Below are positions 8,301 to 17,571 of a DNA stretch of 64,000 bases, piece after piece (the stretch's first letter is position 1; each line of letters starts with the position of its first letter). The stretch spans positions 63,056 to 127,055 of the forward strand of contig JAHLWZ010000810.1 of assembly GCA_020536535.1 (NCBI GenBank), read 5' to 3'. The notes beneath the pieces were generated by a model that saw nothing but the letters and a program-made list of their open reading frames with translations, was not told where the DNA came from and made no database searches. The translations under genes and the position numbers were made by a program. The stretch comes from Pelomyxa schiedti. Its lineage: Eukaryota; Protista; Evosea.

Positions 8301-11300
8301 CATTGATTCCCTCTGACCAGCGTTCACCTCTGAAAACAGTGCCTGCTTTTTCACCTCTCATGGAAGTGACTCCTGCAAACTACTTCCAGGTTAGAAAGAA
8401 AAAGGAAGGCCACATTCAAAGAGATGAAGATATTTCACAGGATTTTGCGTTTATGGAGCGTGACGAAATGATGCCGAACTTCCAAAAAAACAAAGCACTT
8501 GTGGAGCCCTATATTAAAACTCTTTTTCTCCCTGATCAAACTAAAGTGTTCGTTTCATTTCTCCTTTTGGTTTAATATTAACAAATAAAAATGTAGACGT
8601 GAGCAGGCTCCTTTTTCTGTTCTCAATGGCAGCATCTCAGGCGTTCTTGCCTTCACCAGTGTTTTAGTTTCCTACACACAAATGCACCAGCAAAAGCATA
8701 ATGATTTACGCCTCTCCAACTCTGAGTTCGATGTACTCTCCACATTGTTGTTGATGTGCCTAAGTGTTTCGACCAACAGCTCTGATTTCAGGTTACTAAT
8801 GAATGGGCCTACTATGTTTGACTTGGAAATTCTTATTTACGCAGGGCCCCTGCGCACCTTGTTGGGATTGTTACAGCTTTCTATCACAAAGTTGATTCTG
8901 CACAAGAATGTTTGGCAGTGTGTTCCTAATCACAGTGGCAGCAGTCATTAACTTGTTTCTAGTACCGACTTGGGAATGCCCCAATTTGGAAATCTGAAGA
9001 ATTTTGGGATTTCTATTTTGCTTGTACTGGGTGAGTTCTGCTGTTGTTGGCTAACGAGCTTAACAGATAAAGTCCATGATAGCCGGAGTACACTTGATGT
9101 GACATATAACAATCACATAAACGATTGGAACACTTTTTCCTCAACAACACAGCTCTTAATATCCCAAAAAGAGGAAGATGTGATAATGCACACATTGGGG
9201 TCTCTAAGTATCATAAATGTCTTTTCTCCTAGCATTATTTGATTTGTTAATAGTATTTCTGATGCTGTCCCTGGGAGTAGACGCCACTACAACAAAGTCG
9301 TTTGTCAACAAAGTTGTTGATCAGTGCTCTCTTCAATCTGACAAGCACGATCAAATGCTTGTTCTCATCAAGAATTTGTATTTCCTCCAACATCAATTGA
9401 TCTTTAACATTACGTAAGAGCCAAAGCTCATGAAGAATCCATAACACAGCTGCAAGCCATTAAATCCAAGGTTCCATTATAATGCGTTTAAAAAAAAAAC
9501 TGTTAACATTATGAAGATGAAAAAATTTGATGCTCCCCCACCAGGGAAATCCAAAGATGATTCCTCAAAATTACCTATTAAACAACCTCCTTTAATGCCA
9601 CCACCCACTTCAATCCCTGATAAAGAAGGAATGGGGTTAGGTGTGATTGGTCCAGAGAAAAAAGACGGGTTTAATATTACAACCCTACAAGGTAGATATC
9701 CATCACCCATGGCATAGTCTCACCTTTTGTAGGCGGAATTGGCCCAATCTCCTGCACATCCATGCACGGACCTATACTTCTTAGTGGGAGCACACTTGGT
9801 CCTGTGAGTTTGTGGGATACAGAGTCCCTACAGTTTATAAGCAAATTAACTGGACATACTGCTGAGGTACTAACAATGAAGAGAGCACTAACTCATTGAT
9901 TTTAGGTTAGTTCTGTACACTTCGGGTCCAACATTGTAAGCTCTTCATATGATAGCACCCTTAGGGTATCTCTTATTATGTGAAACTCATTTTTTTATGT
10001 TGTTATTTTAGGTGTGGGATCCAAGCAACCATAAATGTATTACAGAACTTAAGGGTCACACAGGCCCAATTTACTCTTCCCTGTTGCATCGTAGTTCTGC
10101 GATTATAAGGTATGCCATTATCACCTGTCAACTGGAAACAACGACCGTGTTAGTGGTGGAGCAGATAGACTAGTTCGTCTGTGGGATACTCGAGTGGCAA
10201 ATTCAGTGAGCTCTCTTATTGGTCACAGAGGTCCGATTAGAACTCTCACTGATTCCACGCTCGATGCTCCTTCCTCAATAATTGTATCAGCTGGTGAAGA
10301 TAATATCATCAAGGTTGTGGTGAAGGGTCTTGCCTTTATAAACTCAAAACCAGGTCTGGGATCTCAAAAAAATGGACTGCCTGTATACACTTGAGGGACA
10401 CACAAATTTTATAACGCAAGTTCTTTTTGATTCTAAGACGATCATCAGTGCCAGTTACGATTGTACACTGAAGGTAGTTTCTCCAAAATCTTTTTATGGT
10501 ACTGACATCATTGGGGTTACTAGTGTTGGGACATGAAAGACTCTGGAAGATGTACTCGTAGTTTAGTGGGTCACCAAGGAAGTGTTAACTGCTTTGCTAT
10601 TGACAAATCATCATCTAAAATTGTTTCTGGATCTGGTGACAACATGATTCGAGTGTGGGATCATGACTCAGCAAATTGTTGTGCTGTACTACGAGGACAC
10701 TCTGCTGAAGTAACATGTCTGGCTTGTGTTGATGGATGGTATGCCTACCCATGAATACTTGTCAAGGGATGTCTCACAATGTTTAGGGTAGTATCCGGAA
10801 GTGAAGATAAGACTGTGAGAATGTGGACACTCAATGGTGATTGTGTAAAATTGCTTAGAGGTCATGATGATTCAGTATGTGACATAACAACTAACTATCT
10901 ATATTTTTTGTACTCTTTACATATTTGTTTCATGCCAACAGCTCACAAGTATATACGCACAAAGTAAACTACGCATCATTTCTACTTCCCGAGATTCCAC
11001 TGCCAGAATTTGGTCCATAACACCTCCCCAGCCTCCGACGACCACAGGCTCTACTTTTGTTCTTGGGCACAGGAAATATGCTGCATCAGTGGATAACAGT
11101 CATTTCTCCCAATTAAAGAGTTCCAGTCCTGTCAATACTAAGTACAAGATCAAACAAAGTGAATGGTAGTAACCCATTCTCAGGATGTCAATTCCATTGA
11201 AGCCTGCTGCTCCAGCACCAACTCCCACTAAATCGGGGTTGCCAATGATGCTTCATCATAGGACGCTCAGTGGTGACTCGACAAAGTCCTCTGGCCCGTC

Positions 11301-12075
11301 ACCCTTCCACACAACACCCATAATCATCACCCCATCACAATCTGTACAAGCACCCACGCCATCAGTCACAATATCCACTGCCGACTCCACTCCTTCACCT
11401 ACTCCATCTCCAACTTCCTCACCAACACTCCCTCCAATCCCTCCACCGTCACAATTGCCATCTGGGTCCCAATTCTTATCCCCATCAGCAGCTCACATTA
11501 TGCCCCCAGCAGCAGCTCCATCATTGGACTCTCCCCAGCAACAGCATCAGCAGCATCAACAGCAGTTACTACCCCCACTTCCCCTTTTACCCTCATCAAC
11601 CTCAGGTACTAACCTCACAACCACAAATGCAGTAACCCCTCCTCCTTCAACACAGACACTCACACCCCCCACATCCCTCTCAGGATCCTCATCATTTTTC
11701 TCCAAATTCACGAAAAAGAAGCAACCGGCCCCACCAAGCACCCCATCGCATACAACGACAGCACACACACCCACATATACACACACACCACCCGATTCCA
11801 CCCCAATTAAACAGCAACCACAGCACACACCCAGTGAATCACAACCATTACAACCAGAATCCACCATTACAGTTGTTCCCAATGTACAACAACAGATTCC
11901 GCATTCAGACTCACCAATCACAACAACAGCTACACCCCCAATACAACATTCGCACCGGAGACAGCAACCGCAGCACCCACTGCCACCAACTCCACAGAGA
12001 ACTGATTCAACTAGTCCCACCCCAGCAGATAAGGATAACAACAGAGTACCAAGCCCGTCACCCAACAAACCATAA
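5352..12075 (+). CDS. DENN-domain (putative Rab GEF) protein with coiled coil and C-terminal WD40 repeats (SCD1-like architecture); Pro/Ser-rich N-terminus and probable Pro/Thr/Gln-rich C-terminal tail
   Basis: DENN motifs RLVDYFLVI, FFTFVVTEVDGSRYFGSAL, CLCILSRYAFYSTFKQFL and AVLEEKRILFLSS; WD40 repeats such as LVGHQGSVNCFAID...SGSGDNMIRVWD and VSGSEDKTVRMW. The unspliced frame stops at 11169. A 42-nt GT-AG intron (11142-11183) joins it in frame to ORF 11185-12075, which could alternatively be a separate gene. Confidence 0.75.
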
Positions 12076-12315
12076 ACGAATTGCTAAAAAAAAAAAAAAA
12101 AAGAAAATCAAAAGCAATCACAAAGACCCAAGTGCTCACTGCTCCAAAATACCAGGAAGCTACAACGCTTCTTGCGGGAATGTCTCAACTCATTACACCT
12201 CCCACTGTCCGGAAAGCAGCTGGAGGACAGAAGTCCTGAATACTAACACCGAGAAGAGACTACTACCCCTCAGCTCGTGCGGTTCGCATAAGTCGTAGTT
12301 CGGCCGTTAGTTGGA

Positions 12316-14594
12316 ATGGCGGCACAGAAGGAGGGAAGGGTGTTACTGTACGGACCGTGCTGTGTGGGGAAAACGGCTCTAATGGAGTCGTATGTGCCGG
12401 TCTTGTTGCGACTCTGCTCGGCACTCCTTTTTTTTTTTTTCTTTTTACCAACGCACTTTGAAATGCAGGTATTGCAGTGGTCGATGGCGTCCGGAGTCTT
12501 ACGACGGTTCTTTGGAAGTTTCGGTGAGTAGCCCAAAAATTGTTTACATCCTTGCCAATCATGTAGTAGTACAAAAAAATGGTGGTTGTTGATTCTGTTC
12601 CTGTGATACTGGAGTTCTTGGACACGTGTGTACCAGGGACCAGTAGCATTTTTTCTTTAACGACAAAAACAAAACAAATTAAAATAAAACAAAACAAACA
12701 AACAAACAAAAAAAAGTGCTGGGCAGGAAGAATATCCTTCCATGCTATCACAGATGTATGTAACCACTTCTAGAAGATTTTTTTTTACATTGTGTGCCAC
12801 TACCAGTTTCCGGAGTGCAAATGTGGTCCTTTTATGCTTCTCTCTTGATAACCGAAGTACTTTTGATGACGCTTTGAACAGATTCTTCCCTGAAATTCGT
12901 CAAGAATCGCAGGTAGTTAAAAATAAATGGTTTCTTTACCGAACCTCTTTACCATTGGTTTGTGGGTTTTTAGGGGGTAGTCATTCTTGCTGGTCTCAGA
13001 CTAGACCTTATTAATACAGAGCACCCTTCAACCAGTGACGTATGTACTTTCTTGTGCATTGACAACCGTTTAAATATTGTTCTTACTTTGCGTGCAGCCG
13101 CCTTCAGGGACCACAGTTTCATTTCAGGAGGGTATTTCTGCAGCTATAAAAAATGCAATGTATGGTTACTTTCAATGCAGGTGCAGTGTACTATGCTATT
13201 GTTCCTTTTACCAAAACTTGTTTAGCGCCAAGCAAGCAGTTGGCCTGGACAACCTTTTTGTGGAAGTATGCCGAGCTGGGATGTTTGGCGACAAGAAGTC
13301 TATGTCCACAAAAAAACCAGGACTCTTCAGTTTTTTTTCAAAAAGATCGCATAACAAGCCAGTATCCACACAAAAGTGAACCTCTACTACTTCTATGTTC
13401 TTTTATCTCATTTTTGAAGTTCCCACCATACCGTGGATATCTCTCCAGGAACTGTTGTCCAAACTTCACTGAACGTCATCCCCAATAACATTTGGCTCTG
13501 TACGTAAGACACAAAAAGTTTTTTCCCCAACCCCACAAATCAGTTGTCATGGAATACCTTGACTTCCCGGCACTGATCCGGGTCTCTCGAACATGCAAGC
13601 TGTTTTATCACCTTGCCAAGACCGAACCAATGTGGACAAATGCATTTCGTGGGGTTTGGAATTACCCTGGCTTTGTTAAAGGATTGAGTTGGAAAAACCC
13701 CTCGTTCACATGGGACCCTGAAAGGTGTTTCCATGACTATGTTCCCCCTCCACCAAGACGCCGGCGTGTATGTATCACATATATGAGTTGGCATTCCTCA
13801 AATTGCGCAGTCCGGTTCAGATGACATTGTCTGCTTTGGTCCAAATACGAGCATCTTGCTGTCTAATAACAAGGTTTGCCCTATGAAAGACCTAGCAGTC
13901 GGGAATCAAGTTCTTGCTTTCTATCCCACTTACAATGACTGTGGTTATTTTTCTCTCGCTGTTGTGCACTGCATTTGGAAGTGTGTGTTTCGCGATTCAT
14001 ACAAAATCTCAGACCTATAGATGTCCAGTGCATCGGGCTATTCCAATGATTGTTATTCACAGCAACTCGACCGACTCAGCAACCGAGTCAGTACTTGAAA
14101 TCACGCCCGACCACCCAATTCTACAGCTGAATGACCACTGTCAACAGCACCCAGTGATTACGCAAATAACCAACAATGAACACAACAAGTGGTGCCTCCC
14201 TACCGCCCTCGGTGAACCACAAATGATTGATGTGGAGTATGTCTACAACATAGCACTGCAGTCACTCCCACCGCGGCAACACACACTCAGCATAATTCCG
14301 GCATCAGATTCCATCAACAGCGGCACCAGCACAAACGATACAGCTTCCAGTGGTTCCAGCCCCCACTGCCCTGATAATGATTGCGATGGTGTTGATTACG
14401 ACCCTAACACACAGAGACGTGGTGGAGGAGGTGTGGTGGTTGGTAGGTGGTGCTGTTGCACTCTTGGGATGAGTGTCCCTGGCTACCCTGATGACTGGTG
14501 GGGTACTGACCGTGTCATATCCTGGCTGGAATCCAGGCCTGACTTCCCAAATGTACAATCACACCCACCACTCCACCACTCCAAAAAGTGCTAG
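12316..14594 (+). CDS. Atypical Rho-like small GTPase - F-box - Hint (Vint-type) domain fusion protein
   Basis: GTPase motifs GPCCVGKT, LDTAGQEEY, VLLCFSLD, ILAGLRLDL and YFQCSAK. Introns 13376-13419, 13500-13543, 13768-13810 and 13981-14020 keep the frame through an F-box (LNVIPNNIWLFVMEYLDFPALIRVSRTCKLFYHLA) and a Hint domain (CFGPNTSILLSNNKVCPMKDLAVGNQVL; LEITPDHPIL; YVYNIAL; VVVGRWCCCTLG...WWGTDRVISWL). Confidence 0.85.
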
Positions 14595-14762
14595 TAATGA
14601 GGCTGCTCTGCTCAAGCCAACAAAAGTTTTTCCTCCTCTATTCACTCCGCATTCCTTGAAAATTTTCCGAAGATGAACAAAATTTTGTTCGTTCGTCTCA
14701 GAGCCACGGCTTTGAGAGAACAAAGGGGCTGTAAGGAAAAAAAACACAAACAAATGATACAT

Positions 14763-16206
14763 TTAACTGCCACGCAAGGGGCAGCTTGAGGTGGGTGATA
14801 AAGGGGAGATCTGTGGCTCAGGTCTCGTTGGGTTGGTGGTTGTGTCGGTGGAGGCGGAAACACGGCGCTCGCTTTTTTGTTTCTTCATTTGTGCGGGGTG
14901 CTCGCGAATGAATACTGTTGTGTTGGGTGGAATGTCCTCTTGAATCCACGAGTTTGCTCCAATACTCACATTGTCACCAATGATTATTGGGCCTAGTGTT
15001 AATGGTGAATTTTATGGAAAGTAAAATTAAGTACTTGTAGTTTGGGGGGACGTTATGCTATCATACCTAACAGTTTTGTTCCAGTTCCTATAACTACATG
15101 GTTTCCAACAGTAGGGTGCCTTTTATAGGGCCCTTTTTTGAGTGTCTTGGTGGATTCGTCAATCTCGAAGTGGAGGGCGCCGAGAGTCACGTTTTGGTAT
15201 AACCGGCACCAACTTCCAATTTCTTTAATTGACAACAAATTGAGAAACACTTATTGGCGAGGGCTTGATTACCTGCAGTTTCTCCTATCACAGTGCCCAC
15301 CCCGTGATCGATGAAGAAATACTACAGTTTTTAAGTGATTGATTTCCCATTAGCATGGACATCACACCTCACCAATTTTCGCTCCTGGATGCAGATCGAT
15401 CGCTGTTAGTCTGTGGACCATTTCACATAATTCTCTTGGATAGACAAGTGCCTTCACCAAGTAAAATTCATGTGCTATCCTTTGTATCATCACTGCAGCA
15501 AGGCCTGGAATGTCTAAGTTCCTCACAGGAAAATAGAGTGACACACTTGGATAACAGCGAATGATTTCCGCAATTGAAGCTGCTGCGGGATCACCCTGGT
15601 ATGCTGCTAAAACTACATGATCATTATAAATACAATGAACGAAGTACAGTTGAGACTCTTACCATCTTTCTTCAGTAGTTCCCGTATCTCCCCCAGCTTC
15701 AAAAATACAACGACTACCATTCCCACAACACTTAGCACATCCTGATGATACGGGAAAATCCCATCAAACATTACTCCTGCGAGGTGATTCAACTTCTCTC
15801 GCAATAGAGGCTTGTTTCCCAGTACAGCGAGTTCACAGCAGTTATAAAACCGCGGCCACATTATCTGTTAATATGAGGAACTTAGCTAGCACCCCAAGTG
15901 AATGACTACTACCTCCATAAGCAAATCCAGCTCCGTGAAGGTTATTCTCAATGGGAAGGTTACATACCTTCCCATGTTGGAGCTTGCCGTTACCCTAGAT
16001 GACTGCATCTCTCTTAGGACAGGATCCCTCCCGTCGCCTTGCTGTACTATTCGCGCTGGCGAAACAGACGCGGCAGAAGCCACCAAGGACGTGAACCGCT
16101 GGTCTGCAGAATCCAGCTCATAACTACGCTGCAGCGACGCAATCACATCGCTAGACACAATTGTGTCCAGGTGAGGAGCAAGTGGGACCGGCCAAACGTA
16201 TGACAT
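14763..16206 (-). CDS. cysE: Serine O-acetyltransferase (SAT/CysE)
   Basis: Exon peptides [62 protein letters not shown] and [17 protein letters not shown] form the SAT left-handed beta-helix signature. The first ATG is at 16206. Confidence 0.93.
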
Positions 16207-16343
16207 TCAAAGGCACTCTTTAGCAGCAACTCTGTCACCTCTGTAACTTTTGTTTTTCCAGTCTGATTGATGACTGTACGTGGCTGTGGGCCCCTTTCCA
16301 CTCAGCAAAGAATTACACACAAAACACGTTGCACCTGTGTGTA

Positions 16344-17571
16344 TCAATCTTTTGAAATGGAAAAAAATCCGGAGATGGAAGACGCCTCCCTGATCTTTAG
16401 GAACGACCTTCTCAGAGTAAAGTTATTCGTCTTCGCCACTTTTTCGCCTAAGATTGAAAGAAAATCTGGGCTTCCTAAATTTGAAAAGAAGCTTCGTTTT
16501 GATTTGATATGAACAGAAATCTTTTTGTGTGTTTTCTTGTTCGTTACAATCACAGGAACTGTAGCGACGAGTTGAATAGTGCTTCCAGATTGTGAAAGGG
16601 ATGTTATGATATTAGCAATGATGGTTTCCAATAGCGGAGCTTGGGGACATTGTGGTGGTTAATGCTGAACTGTAAAAGCCCTCGGCCACTACGAACGTTT
16701 AGCAGCTCTTTGATTGACTGGAAGGGAGGAATGATTGGTGCGGTGTCAAATTGAGGAAATGTGATGTTACCAGGAACGGGGGGCCAATAGCTGTAGAGTC
16801 TGGAAGTGCCTTGTAGCTGCCCTCATCATGTTTAAGTGCCATGCATACAGCTTCTCCAATCAGCATCAGTGCGCACGTATTCCCATCTCGAAGAGCTGAG
16901 AGAGTCATATTCAGAGCAAGTGTGACCTGCTCTGCCTTGTCACTTGGAGAGTACCTATTCAAACCGATGTTACACAAAAACTCAAAGATGGGCATTACCC
17001 TAAGAGAGTTACAAAGTCAAATAAGCAAGCCGCAGGATTTAACCACGCAGCGCCCCCACCTGCCAGTGATACAATTTTGTAGTTGTATTTGACCAATTCC
17101 TGAGCAACCATATGCCCTCTAATACCTACTTGGCAGTACTAACGAAGGTTTTTCATTTAGAATAGAGATCAACAAGTAGGGTGCAAAAGCATACCACAAC
17201 AATAAGTTTATCCTGAAAAGCCCTACGGAATGCTTCATCTCTTATAGCAGTAACAACCAATTCTCCCATCGGAATCACGGTACTATACCAATTACGAGGG
17301 GGAAACAAAGCCCCAAACAACAAATGCATGTGTAAAAAAACAAAAAAAAAAAAATAACAAAAAAAAAAAACCTATTGGGAATTGGTGGCTCCGCAGCATA
17401 AGGTTCGTCCCTCTCCACTATGCACAAAACGGCAGTCTTCGCACGGCCTTCCTCCGTAGACAGTAGCTTTTGCAGCGTCTGTCTGTGGATCTCCAGATTG
17501 TCCGCGCCCCCCGGCGACCCGCTCCCACCACTGCCGTTTAGCTTGGCACCACTCCCCGGATGGCTGCACAT
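16344..17571 (-). CDS. Rhodanese-domain + DsrE/DsrF-like domain fusion (putative sulfurtransferase); 3' end unresolved
   Basis: ATG at 17571. The spliced rhodanese fold PPIPNSTVIPMGEL...DKLIVVYCQVGIRGHMVAQELVKYNYKIVSLAGGGAAW has a CxxGxR active loop (Cys codon 17133-17135). It is followed in frame by the DsrE-like FVTLLGYSPSDKAEQVTLALNMTLSALRDGNTCALMLIGEAVCMALK...PPFLSIKELL. Confidence 0.72.

Follow-up and report, generated by a model that had tools for sequence, protein, structure and literature searches.

We found that a gene on the plus strand of a contig from the amoeba Pelomyxa schiedti, at 12316-14594 of the 64,000-nucleotide (nt) stretch analysed here (the window), is spliced into a single open frame for a small GTPase, an F-box and a Vint-type Hint domain. 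We favour, with a probability of roughly 0.6, the reading that its product is a substrate receptor of Skp1-Cul1-F-box (SCF) ubiquitin ligases and that the Vint domain of this product releases or modifies its GTPase-F-box part. In the mechanism suggested by the sequence, the F-box would dock the protein on Skp1 and hence on the Cul1 (SCF) ubiquitin ligase, and the N-terminal GTPase, joined by a Kelch propeller in longer paralogues, would bind partners or substrates or set the location of the protein. Cys319, aided by Thr396 and His399, would carry out an N-to-S acyl shift at the Val318-Cys319 bond. Once water or another nucleophile had resolved the thioester, the GTPase and F-box would separate from the Vint domain as a fragment of 318 residues. 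The protein is probably cytosolic, with no evident signal peptide.

Once 11 introns are removed, one frame on the plus strand stays open between its ATG (12316) and its TAG (14592-14594), giving 1677 nt and 558 amino acids (aa). The model has 12 exons, and all 11 introns are of the GT-AG type and 40-91 nt long. An initial annotation, made from the sequence alone, had proposed one spliced gene of about 570 aa, hidden in an open reading frame (ORF) track of fragments with an apparent GTPase stop inside an intron. Both features of the track were seen again: the ORF list for 11500-15500 in six frames held only fragments on the plus strand, and the ORF at 13077-13379 stops at the TGA at 13377-13379, within intron 8. 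The four introns that had been named (introns 8-11) were exact in all coordinates and lengths. The spliced single-frame product stood, the exact length had to be corrected to 558 aa, and the seven introns of the GTPase part were added. The parts of the transcript are as follows.

12291..12315, plus strand: 5' untranslated region, with the probable mRNA 5' end at ~12291 (start of the fit of an X1 RNA contig)
12316..14594, plus strand: coding sequence, 558 aa (spliced model; RNA contigs; deposited protein Pelo_11166; paralogue P0027)
12316-12389, 12469-12523, 12570-12625, 12717-12755, 12807-12912 and 12974-13039, plus strand: exons 1-6 (spliced model)
13098-13180, 13226-13375, 13420-13499, 13544-13767, 13811-13980 and 14021-14594, plus strand: exons 7-12 (spliced model)
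12390-12468, 12524-12569, 12626-12716 and 12756-12806, plus strand: introns 1-4, in the GTPase part (spliced model)
12913-12973, 13040-13097 and 13181-13225, plus strand: introns 5-7, in the GTPase part (spliced model)
13376-13419 (44 nt), 13500-13543 (44 nt), 13768-13810 (43 nt) and 13981-14020 (40 nt), plus strand: introns 8-11 (spliced model)
14595..14640, plus strand: 3' untranslated region, extending at least to 14640 (RNA contigs reach 14618 in X2 and 14640 in X1)

RNA data came from four single-cell RNA sequencing runs of one sample, which were examined as assembled contigs. The joints of introns 1, 2, 5, 6, 7, 9, 10 and 11 were exact in these contigs, all with GT..AG ends; the joint of intron 9 was present in two runs and that of intron 10 in three. 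Intron 3 sits in a stretch that the mapping skipped as repeat, so length arithmetic was used. One 256-nt contig is accounted for by 21 adapter letters and pieces of 99, 55, 56 and 25 nt (21 + 99 + 55 + 56 + 25 = 256), and the depth figures agree. Counting intron 3, RNA contigs confirmed 9 of the 11 splices, in agreement with the one spliced gene first proposed. The contigs showed no joint for intron 4, and the fit of one contig begins at its acceptor, 12807. Fitted RNA pieces belonging to the gene had zero letters differing from the window. An X1 contig carries 21 loose letters ahead of its fit at 12291, which we take to be the Smart-seq template-switch oligo; because the contig starts there after such letters, the 5' end of the mRNA is placed near 12291. 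The published P. schiedti transcriptomes were made by Smart-Seq2 (PMC8887013).

The deposited protein Pelo_11166 (P0001, 488 aa; GCA_020536535.1) is identical to residues 71-558 of the spliced model. We retrieved it by a profile-free search with the last exon among 1.84 billion representative proteins. The Pelo annotation pipeline consisted of Augustus, refined by PASA and EVM using transcript data (PMC8887013). The Pelo_11166 model begins at the ATG at 12742, and exons 1-3 and part of exon 4 are missing from it, a loss of 70 residues that include the P-loop and DTAGQ. The RNA contigs and paralogue P0027, with which the spliced model aligns end to end at 62% identity, support the longer model starting at 12316 over the Pelo_11166 start. 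The 64,000-nt window holds no second copy of the gene.

Multiple displacement amplification can create chimeras. Since the genome was assembled from single cells amplified in this way (PMC8887013), the juxtaposition of the domains might be an artefact of whole-genome amplification or assembly. We consider this extremely improbable: the same domain order is present in at least 12 proteins on different contigs, and RNA contigs of later, separate libraries fit the exons without one differing letter.

The protein is divided as follows.

12316..13301, plus strand: putative Rho-like small GTPase, residues 1-185, with introns 1-7 inside (Pfam Ras; PDB matches of a paralogue)
13302..13471, plus strand: basic linker, residues 186-227, with the motif KKxGFFSFFSK (LFSFFSK at 13323-13343; family alignment)
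13376..13419, plus strand: intron 8, 44 nt, phase 2, at the junction of GTPase and F-box (Pelo_11166 splice; paralogues)
13472..13647, plus strand: F-box, residues 228-271, divided by intron 9 (Pfam on P0001)
13648..13831, plus strand: conserved post-F-box region, residues 272-318, with intron 10 inside, ending in PPPPRRRRSGSDDIV directly before the Vint cysteine (family alignment)
13832..14591, plus strand: Vint-type Hint domain, residues 319-558, with intron 11 inside (Pfam, fold and profile)

All three domains that had been read from the sequence were recovered by Pfam on the deposited protein. The F-box region matched F-box-like at 31.7 bits (cut-off 24.3; profile positions 2-45 of 47) and F-box at 26.7 bits (cut-off 20.5), both above the gathering cut-offs, and exon 10 by itself scored 27.6 bits as an F-box. 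The C-terminal region matched Vint (PF14623) at 27.6 bits against a cut-off of 27, with paralogues reaching up to 54 bits, and the Hint domain named in the initial annotation could thus be assigned specifically to the Vint type, as the fold and profile matches described below also indicate. Ras was found at 41.2 bits (cut-off 21.6), and P0001 spans only the C-terminal two thirds of that domain. When single exons were scanned, Hint, Vint and Ras gave sub-threshold matches only.

The Vint domain was modelled with AlphaFold for residues 310-558 from a 21-sequence alignment that takes in distant Rhodomonas and environmental Vint proteins (mean predicted local distance difference test score (pLDDT) 79.9; predicted template modelling score 0.76). 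Foldseek with this model placed the Tetrahymena Vint crystal structure (PDB 8r2c) at the top, with an E value of 6.5e-7 and a template modelling (TM) score of 0.72 by target, followed by BIL2, inteins and Hedgehog. A family profile searched against the PDB likewise matched 8r2c (2e-13) and Hedgehog (6e-6); phmmer with the Vint part against PDB sequences gave no match. In the profile alignment, vCFGP of the family lies on GCF of Hedgehog, which holds the catalytic cysteine, and TpDHP lies on TPAH, which holds the threonine and histidine. The landmarks in the gene are Cys319 at 13832-13834, TPDHP at 14103-14117, CCCTLGM at 14451-14471 and a low-complexity insert at about residues 455-505, which was modelled with a pLDDT below 50. 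Invariant in all 21 sequences were Cys1 (Cys319), T-x-D-H-P (T396-P-D-H399), a Trp, an Asn and CC-x-LG. This conserved pattern, together with the predicted fold, fits a catalytically competent Hint domain. No VWA domain was found by Pfam on P0001 or its paralogues.

The N-terminal domain carries the P-loop GPCCVGKT at residues 13-20 (G1), DTAGQ at 61-65 (G3), LRLD at 118-121 (G4, atypical) and CSAK at 159-162 (G5). When the GTPase of P0006, the closest paralogue of full length, was compared with the PDB, Entamoeba Rho1, yeast RHO1, RhoC and Rac1 ranked highest, with values from 1.8e-20 to ~1e-18, and R-Ras followed closely at 4.9e-19. Of the proposal of a Rho-like GTPase, the Ras-superfamily domain with its G motifs was borne out; judged by these matches, the Rho assignment is reasonable, not proven, and only weakly resolved from R-Ras. 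We did not find a helical Rho insert between strand 5 and helix 4. A loop of roughly the right length is present there, rich in Pro, Ser and Thr, non-helical in the AlphaFold model and with a pLDDT near 50. Both residues at Ras positions 12 and 13 are cysteine, and slow GTP hydrolysis would be expected for this reason. Neither the fusion protein (ending ...HHSKKC) nor the product of intron 8 retention (ending ...STQK) has a CAAX box. The linker, residues 186-227, was modelled with a pLDDT below 50.

The connection of the GTPase to the F-box depends on intron 8, the retention of which leads to an immediate stop at the TGA at 13377-13379. Pelo_11166 has the identical intron 8 junction (...STQ|NSH...), and exact spliced alignment to their loci showed that paralogues P0027, P0011 and P0008 each have a linker intron at the same position and in the same phase. 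Sequence is conserved on both sides of it in all three, with KKxGFFSFFSK before and the F-box after. A paralogue with GTPase and F-box in a single exon was also sought; all three mapped paralogues have the linker intron. Further support came from L006, a Logan RNA contig of another paralogue, in which one molecule extends from the C-terminal part of the GTPase through FFSFFS of the linker and a linker intron of 43 nt with GT..AG ends into a fully spliced F-box-Vint part. The linker intron (~127-169) is unspliced and is the only intron retained in L006, and deleting its 43 nt restores the frame. Taken with the RNA joints and the paralogues, the GTPase, F-box and Vint parts very probably belong to a single gene.

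Several observations weigh against a self-processing SCF receptor as the product of this gene. Intron 8 was neither bridged (13375 to 13420) nor covered by the RNA contigs of the four runs, and a search for ORF fragments bridging the exon 8-9 junction gave no candidate. Its donor, GTGAAC, is the weakest of the 11, with a score of 1.1 versus 4.0-9.9 on a small matrix built from the same introns. With this donor and the retention seen in the paralogue contig L006, a GTPase-only product may be common. The family alignment shows the P-loop kept and DxxGQ often lost, and its loss in several paralogues suggests that GTP cycling is not a family-wide requirement. In this family the presumed binding modules stand before the F-box, whereas most F-box proteins carry theirs C-terminal to it. 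The Vint score of P0001 is only 0.6 bit over the Pfam cut-off, and the residue before Cys319 is Val, where Hedgehog has Gly. Finally, we found no published report or test of Vint autoprocessing in the literature, and Vint processing inside the cell was merely presumed by Burglin 2008 (PMC2362128).

The weak donor and the absence of a spliced intron 8 junction from the RNA contigs would suit a stand-alone GTPase, a 210-residue Rho-like protein made mostly or partly from this locus as a result of poor or regulated splicing of intron 8, with the fusion as a minor or conditional product. In the same direction, the linker intron of P0011 (L003 2478-2522) also has the weakest donor of its gene, and L006 retains exactly the linker intron with the downstream introns removed. 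Retention of the linker intron is possibly regulated, the sample being small. Against this, the sequence of intron 8 is uncovered by contigs while both flanking exons are covered: X1 coverage starts from exactly 13420, and X2 coverage ends at 13364 and restarts at 13441. A single letter that does not fit precedes the fit of the X1 contig, which begins exactly at 13420, and a spliced molecule would look like this; frame and sequence are conserved across the linker intron in paralogues; and unspliced nuclear RNA is common in single-cell libraries. A GTPase-only isoform is therefore a live possibility that can coexist with the fused receptor, and we think it somewhat unlikely that it is what the gene mainly or substantially makes.

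The in-frame stop at the exon 8 boundary, the lack of a junction-spanning contig and the F-box score of exon 10 alone would also be found if there were two adjacent genes, the first coding for a GTPase and ending at 13379 and the second coding for an F-box-Vint protein. This arrangement appears very improbable. The gap would be just 44 nt, exon 9 lacks an ATG, the next Met codon falls within the F-box, and the RNA contigs carry no 5' end mark around 13420. Paralogues on other contigs have the parts in the same order, with the same linker motif and intron phase, and L006 carries both parts on one RNA, inside which the apparent start of P0005 is a TTG. P0005 as an independent F-box-Vint protein was rejected, its start having been set at this TTG by a bacterial-style gene caller inside the intron-retaining L006.

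With respect to the Vint domain, the position of a domain C-terminal to the F-box is the usual one for a substrate-binding domain, and the Vint part might be a non-cleaving structural or binding module, such as the real substrate-binding domain of a protein that acts uncut. The Val before Cys319, the long low-complexity insert with a pLDDT below 50 and the lack of any published autoprocessing test that we could find are consistent with such a role. In contrast, Cys1 and T-x-D-H-P are invariant in 21 sequences and, in the profile alignment, fall on the residues that serve catalysis in Hedgehog (Cys, Thr and His). Conservation of a catalytic motif to this degree would not be expected of a scaffold, which makes a mere scaffold unlikely, and we regard an uncut protein as doubtful.

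Processing by the Vint domain would also permit an outcome other than release. By analogy with known Hint proteins, the Vint thioester might transfer the GTPase-F-box module to a specific nucleophile, either a membrane lipid, which would stand in for the prenyl anchor that the Rho-like GTPase lacks, or a lysine of a partner protein. We consider such transfer improbable; if true, lipid or lysine transfer would make these proteins a family of self-anchoring or self-conjugating SCF receptors. In addition, the weak linker intron, through its splicing, might determine how much of the GTPase is free and how much is bound to the ligase.

The gene proved to be one of a family. At least 12 P. schiedti proteins, encoded on different contigs, have the layout Ras-F-box-Vint or Ras-Kelch-F-box-Vint. 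Nine are of the former type (P0001, P0027, P0028, P0002, P0003, P0010, P0011, P0008 and P0009). The latter was found in P0025 by our own Pfam scan and in P0030 and P0038 from precomputed Pfam lists, and P0032 would be a fourth Kelch-bearing member, judging from its length of 800 aa and its clustering with P0015, in which Kelch-F-box-Vint was shown. P0006, P0031 and P0029 are partial or variant models, and P0004 combines ankyrin repeats with Vint. All matches with both GTPase and F-box were from P. schiedti, and those from other organisms carry the Vint domain only. The full layout was thus found in P. schiedti and nowhere else, in searches bounded by shared words and score limits, so that its absence outside this species is provisional. 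That one anaerobic amoeba has at least a dozen of these paralogues, with Kelch propellers in some of them, suggests that the layout is in real use and is not a chance product of exon shuffling.

Two of the paralogue models have peculiarities. P0006 (Ras family, 844 aa, ~67% identity) contains Ras, F-box and the first part of Vint, but where the Vint C-terminus would be expected it carries DUF4403 (122 bits). Either this is a true variant, or the gene model has been fused with that of an adjoining gene. In the P0027 model the conserved segment after the F-box (L002 2825-2949) is spliced out by two introns, the first of 70 nt with a poor donor and the second of 45 nt, between which stands an exon of 10 nt; the model looks doubtful at this place.

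A few RNA contigs departed from the window. An X2 contig of 1057 nt lacks 18 nt at 13695-13715 (gaps of 11, 4 and 3) and is otherwise identical to the window, and the X1 contig is full at this place. The loss, downstream of the F-box, is in-frame and removes 6 residues; it may be allelic or may distinguish one cell from another. Some X2 and X3 contigs diverge from the window at 14119 or 14200 and continue unlike it, and one X1 contig omits 112 nt (14217-14330 region) with non-canonical CA..AG ends. The divergent contigs at 14119-14330 most likely represent transcripts of paralogues or joins made in assembly, in the stretch that codes for the low-complexity insert of the Vint domain, which is variable. 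At 12821 and 14747, contigs begin after short loose ends similar to the terminus of the template-switch oligo (GTACATGGG). These may mark places of template switching within a transcript; the one at 14747 may instead mark where a neighbouring transcript ends.

Upstream, also on the plus strand, a gene for a 1747-aa DENN/WD40 protein is annotated up to 12239; the protein ends in an extended tail enriched in Pro, Ser, Thr and Gln. A run of A at ~12087-12103 follows the stop of the ORF at 11185-12075, though the annotation of this upstream gene reaches 12239. The opposite strand downstream, at 14763-17571 (L001 5022-7830), has annotated genes for a hexapeptide-repeat transferase of 377 aa and for a protein of 241 aa that gave no Pfam match.

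The architecture is a new combination of known domains, in a family expanded in one species. In keeping with the initial statement that the three-domain layout is not known from any characterised protein, we found no paper describing the combination, and literature searches for Vint with F-box, or for Hint with F-box in Amoebozoa, returned nothing relevant. A paper on the Dictyostelium vWFA/VIT-FbxwD protein does not mention Vint. The P. schiedti genome paper mentions neither F-box nor GTPase, and its sole 'hint' is in the title of a gene-prediction reference (PMC8887013). If our proposal is true, a nucleotide switch and a motif for SCF docking share one chain with a Hint domain that cleaves itself. 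Vint domains, first described with VWA, would also serve other cargo, and the family would be a natural setting in which to study the purpose of Vint processing. The species has been grown only in mixed cultures (PMC8887013) and is for this reason likely to be hard to work with.

Among known systems, VWA-Vwaint-Vint proteins (PF14623) share the C-terminal Vint domain (profile 2e-13, TM 0.72), with the motif A Cys1 and the motif B TxxH, and like the Pelomyxa protein they are presumed to be intracellular. Four known VWA-Vint proteins carry a U-box, a precedent for a tie to ubiquitin ligases (PMC2362128). They differ in what stands before the Vint domain, which is VWA and Vwaint there and GTPase and F-box (with Kelch in some members) here, and in the long low-complexity Vint inserts of Pelomyxa. 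The Pelomyxa domain is of the Vint type, yet the protein is not a member of the VWA-Vint family.

RhoBTB proteins combine an atypical Rho GTPase that lacks a CAAX box with BTB domains, act as Cul3 adaptors and have no Hint domain. The likeness, an atypical Rho-like GTPase without CAAX fused to a cullin-docking motif, is an analogy of function only, since the docking motif is BTB (Cul3) in RhoBTB and an F-box (Skp1-Cul1), accompanied by a Hint domain, in Pelomyxa, where Pfam gave no BTB match. The protein had been introduced as an SCF-type analogue of RhoBTB. The GTPase/F-box fusion behind this idea holds, but it is not the first pairing of a GTPase with a cullin adaptor, as FBXO4 and Rab40-type proteins show, and the protein is a family member and not unique. 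FBXO4, an SCF receptor, has an F-box and an atypical small-GTPase domain that binds TRF1 (PMC7086354), and it resembles the proposed Pelomyxa receptor in this union of the two kinds of domain. In FBXO4, however, the F-box comes first and there is no Hint domain, whereas in Pelomyxa the GTPase comes first. The GTPase fold of FBXO4 is also degenerate, while the Pelomyxa GTPase keeps the P-loop, DTAGQ and SAK. Among feature neighbours in the ESM Atlas, FBXO4 appeared at 0.67, a lead that is too low to be evidence of homology. The top neighbours there were clusters marked by Pfam as Ras and SOCS box, again with scores too low to be evidence of homology, and these clusters would correspond to Rab40-type proteins. 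Rab40 likewise has a small GTPase followed by a short cullin-adaptor box, but it pairs a Rab with a SOCS box (Cul5), in contrast to the Rho-like GTPase, F-box and Hint domain of Pelomyxa.

For the processing step, the nearest parallels are the Hog domain of Hedgehog and BIL2 of the Tetrahymena BUBL locus, which have the same Hint fold and, as far as alignment and model allow, would share the same Cys and TxxH chemistry. In Hedgehog the thioester is passed to cholesterol. BIL2 passes it to a lysine of a target protein, so conjugating its cargo (PMC8616854). The Pelomyxa protein differs from both, as it has no C-extein and no ubiquitin-like cargo, and no sterol-recognition region was detected in it. 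Should the proposed SCF receptor be confirmed, the pairing of GTPases with cullin adaptors, so far represented by RhoBTB/Cul3, Rab40/Cul5 and FBXO4/Cul1, would gain a new and independently arisen Cul1 form.

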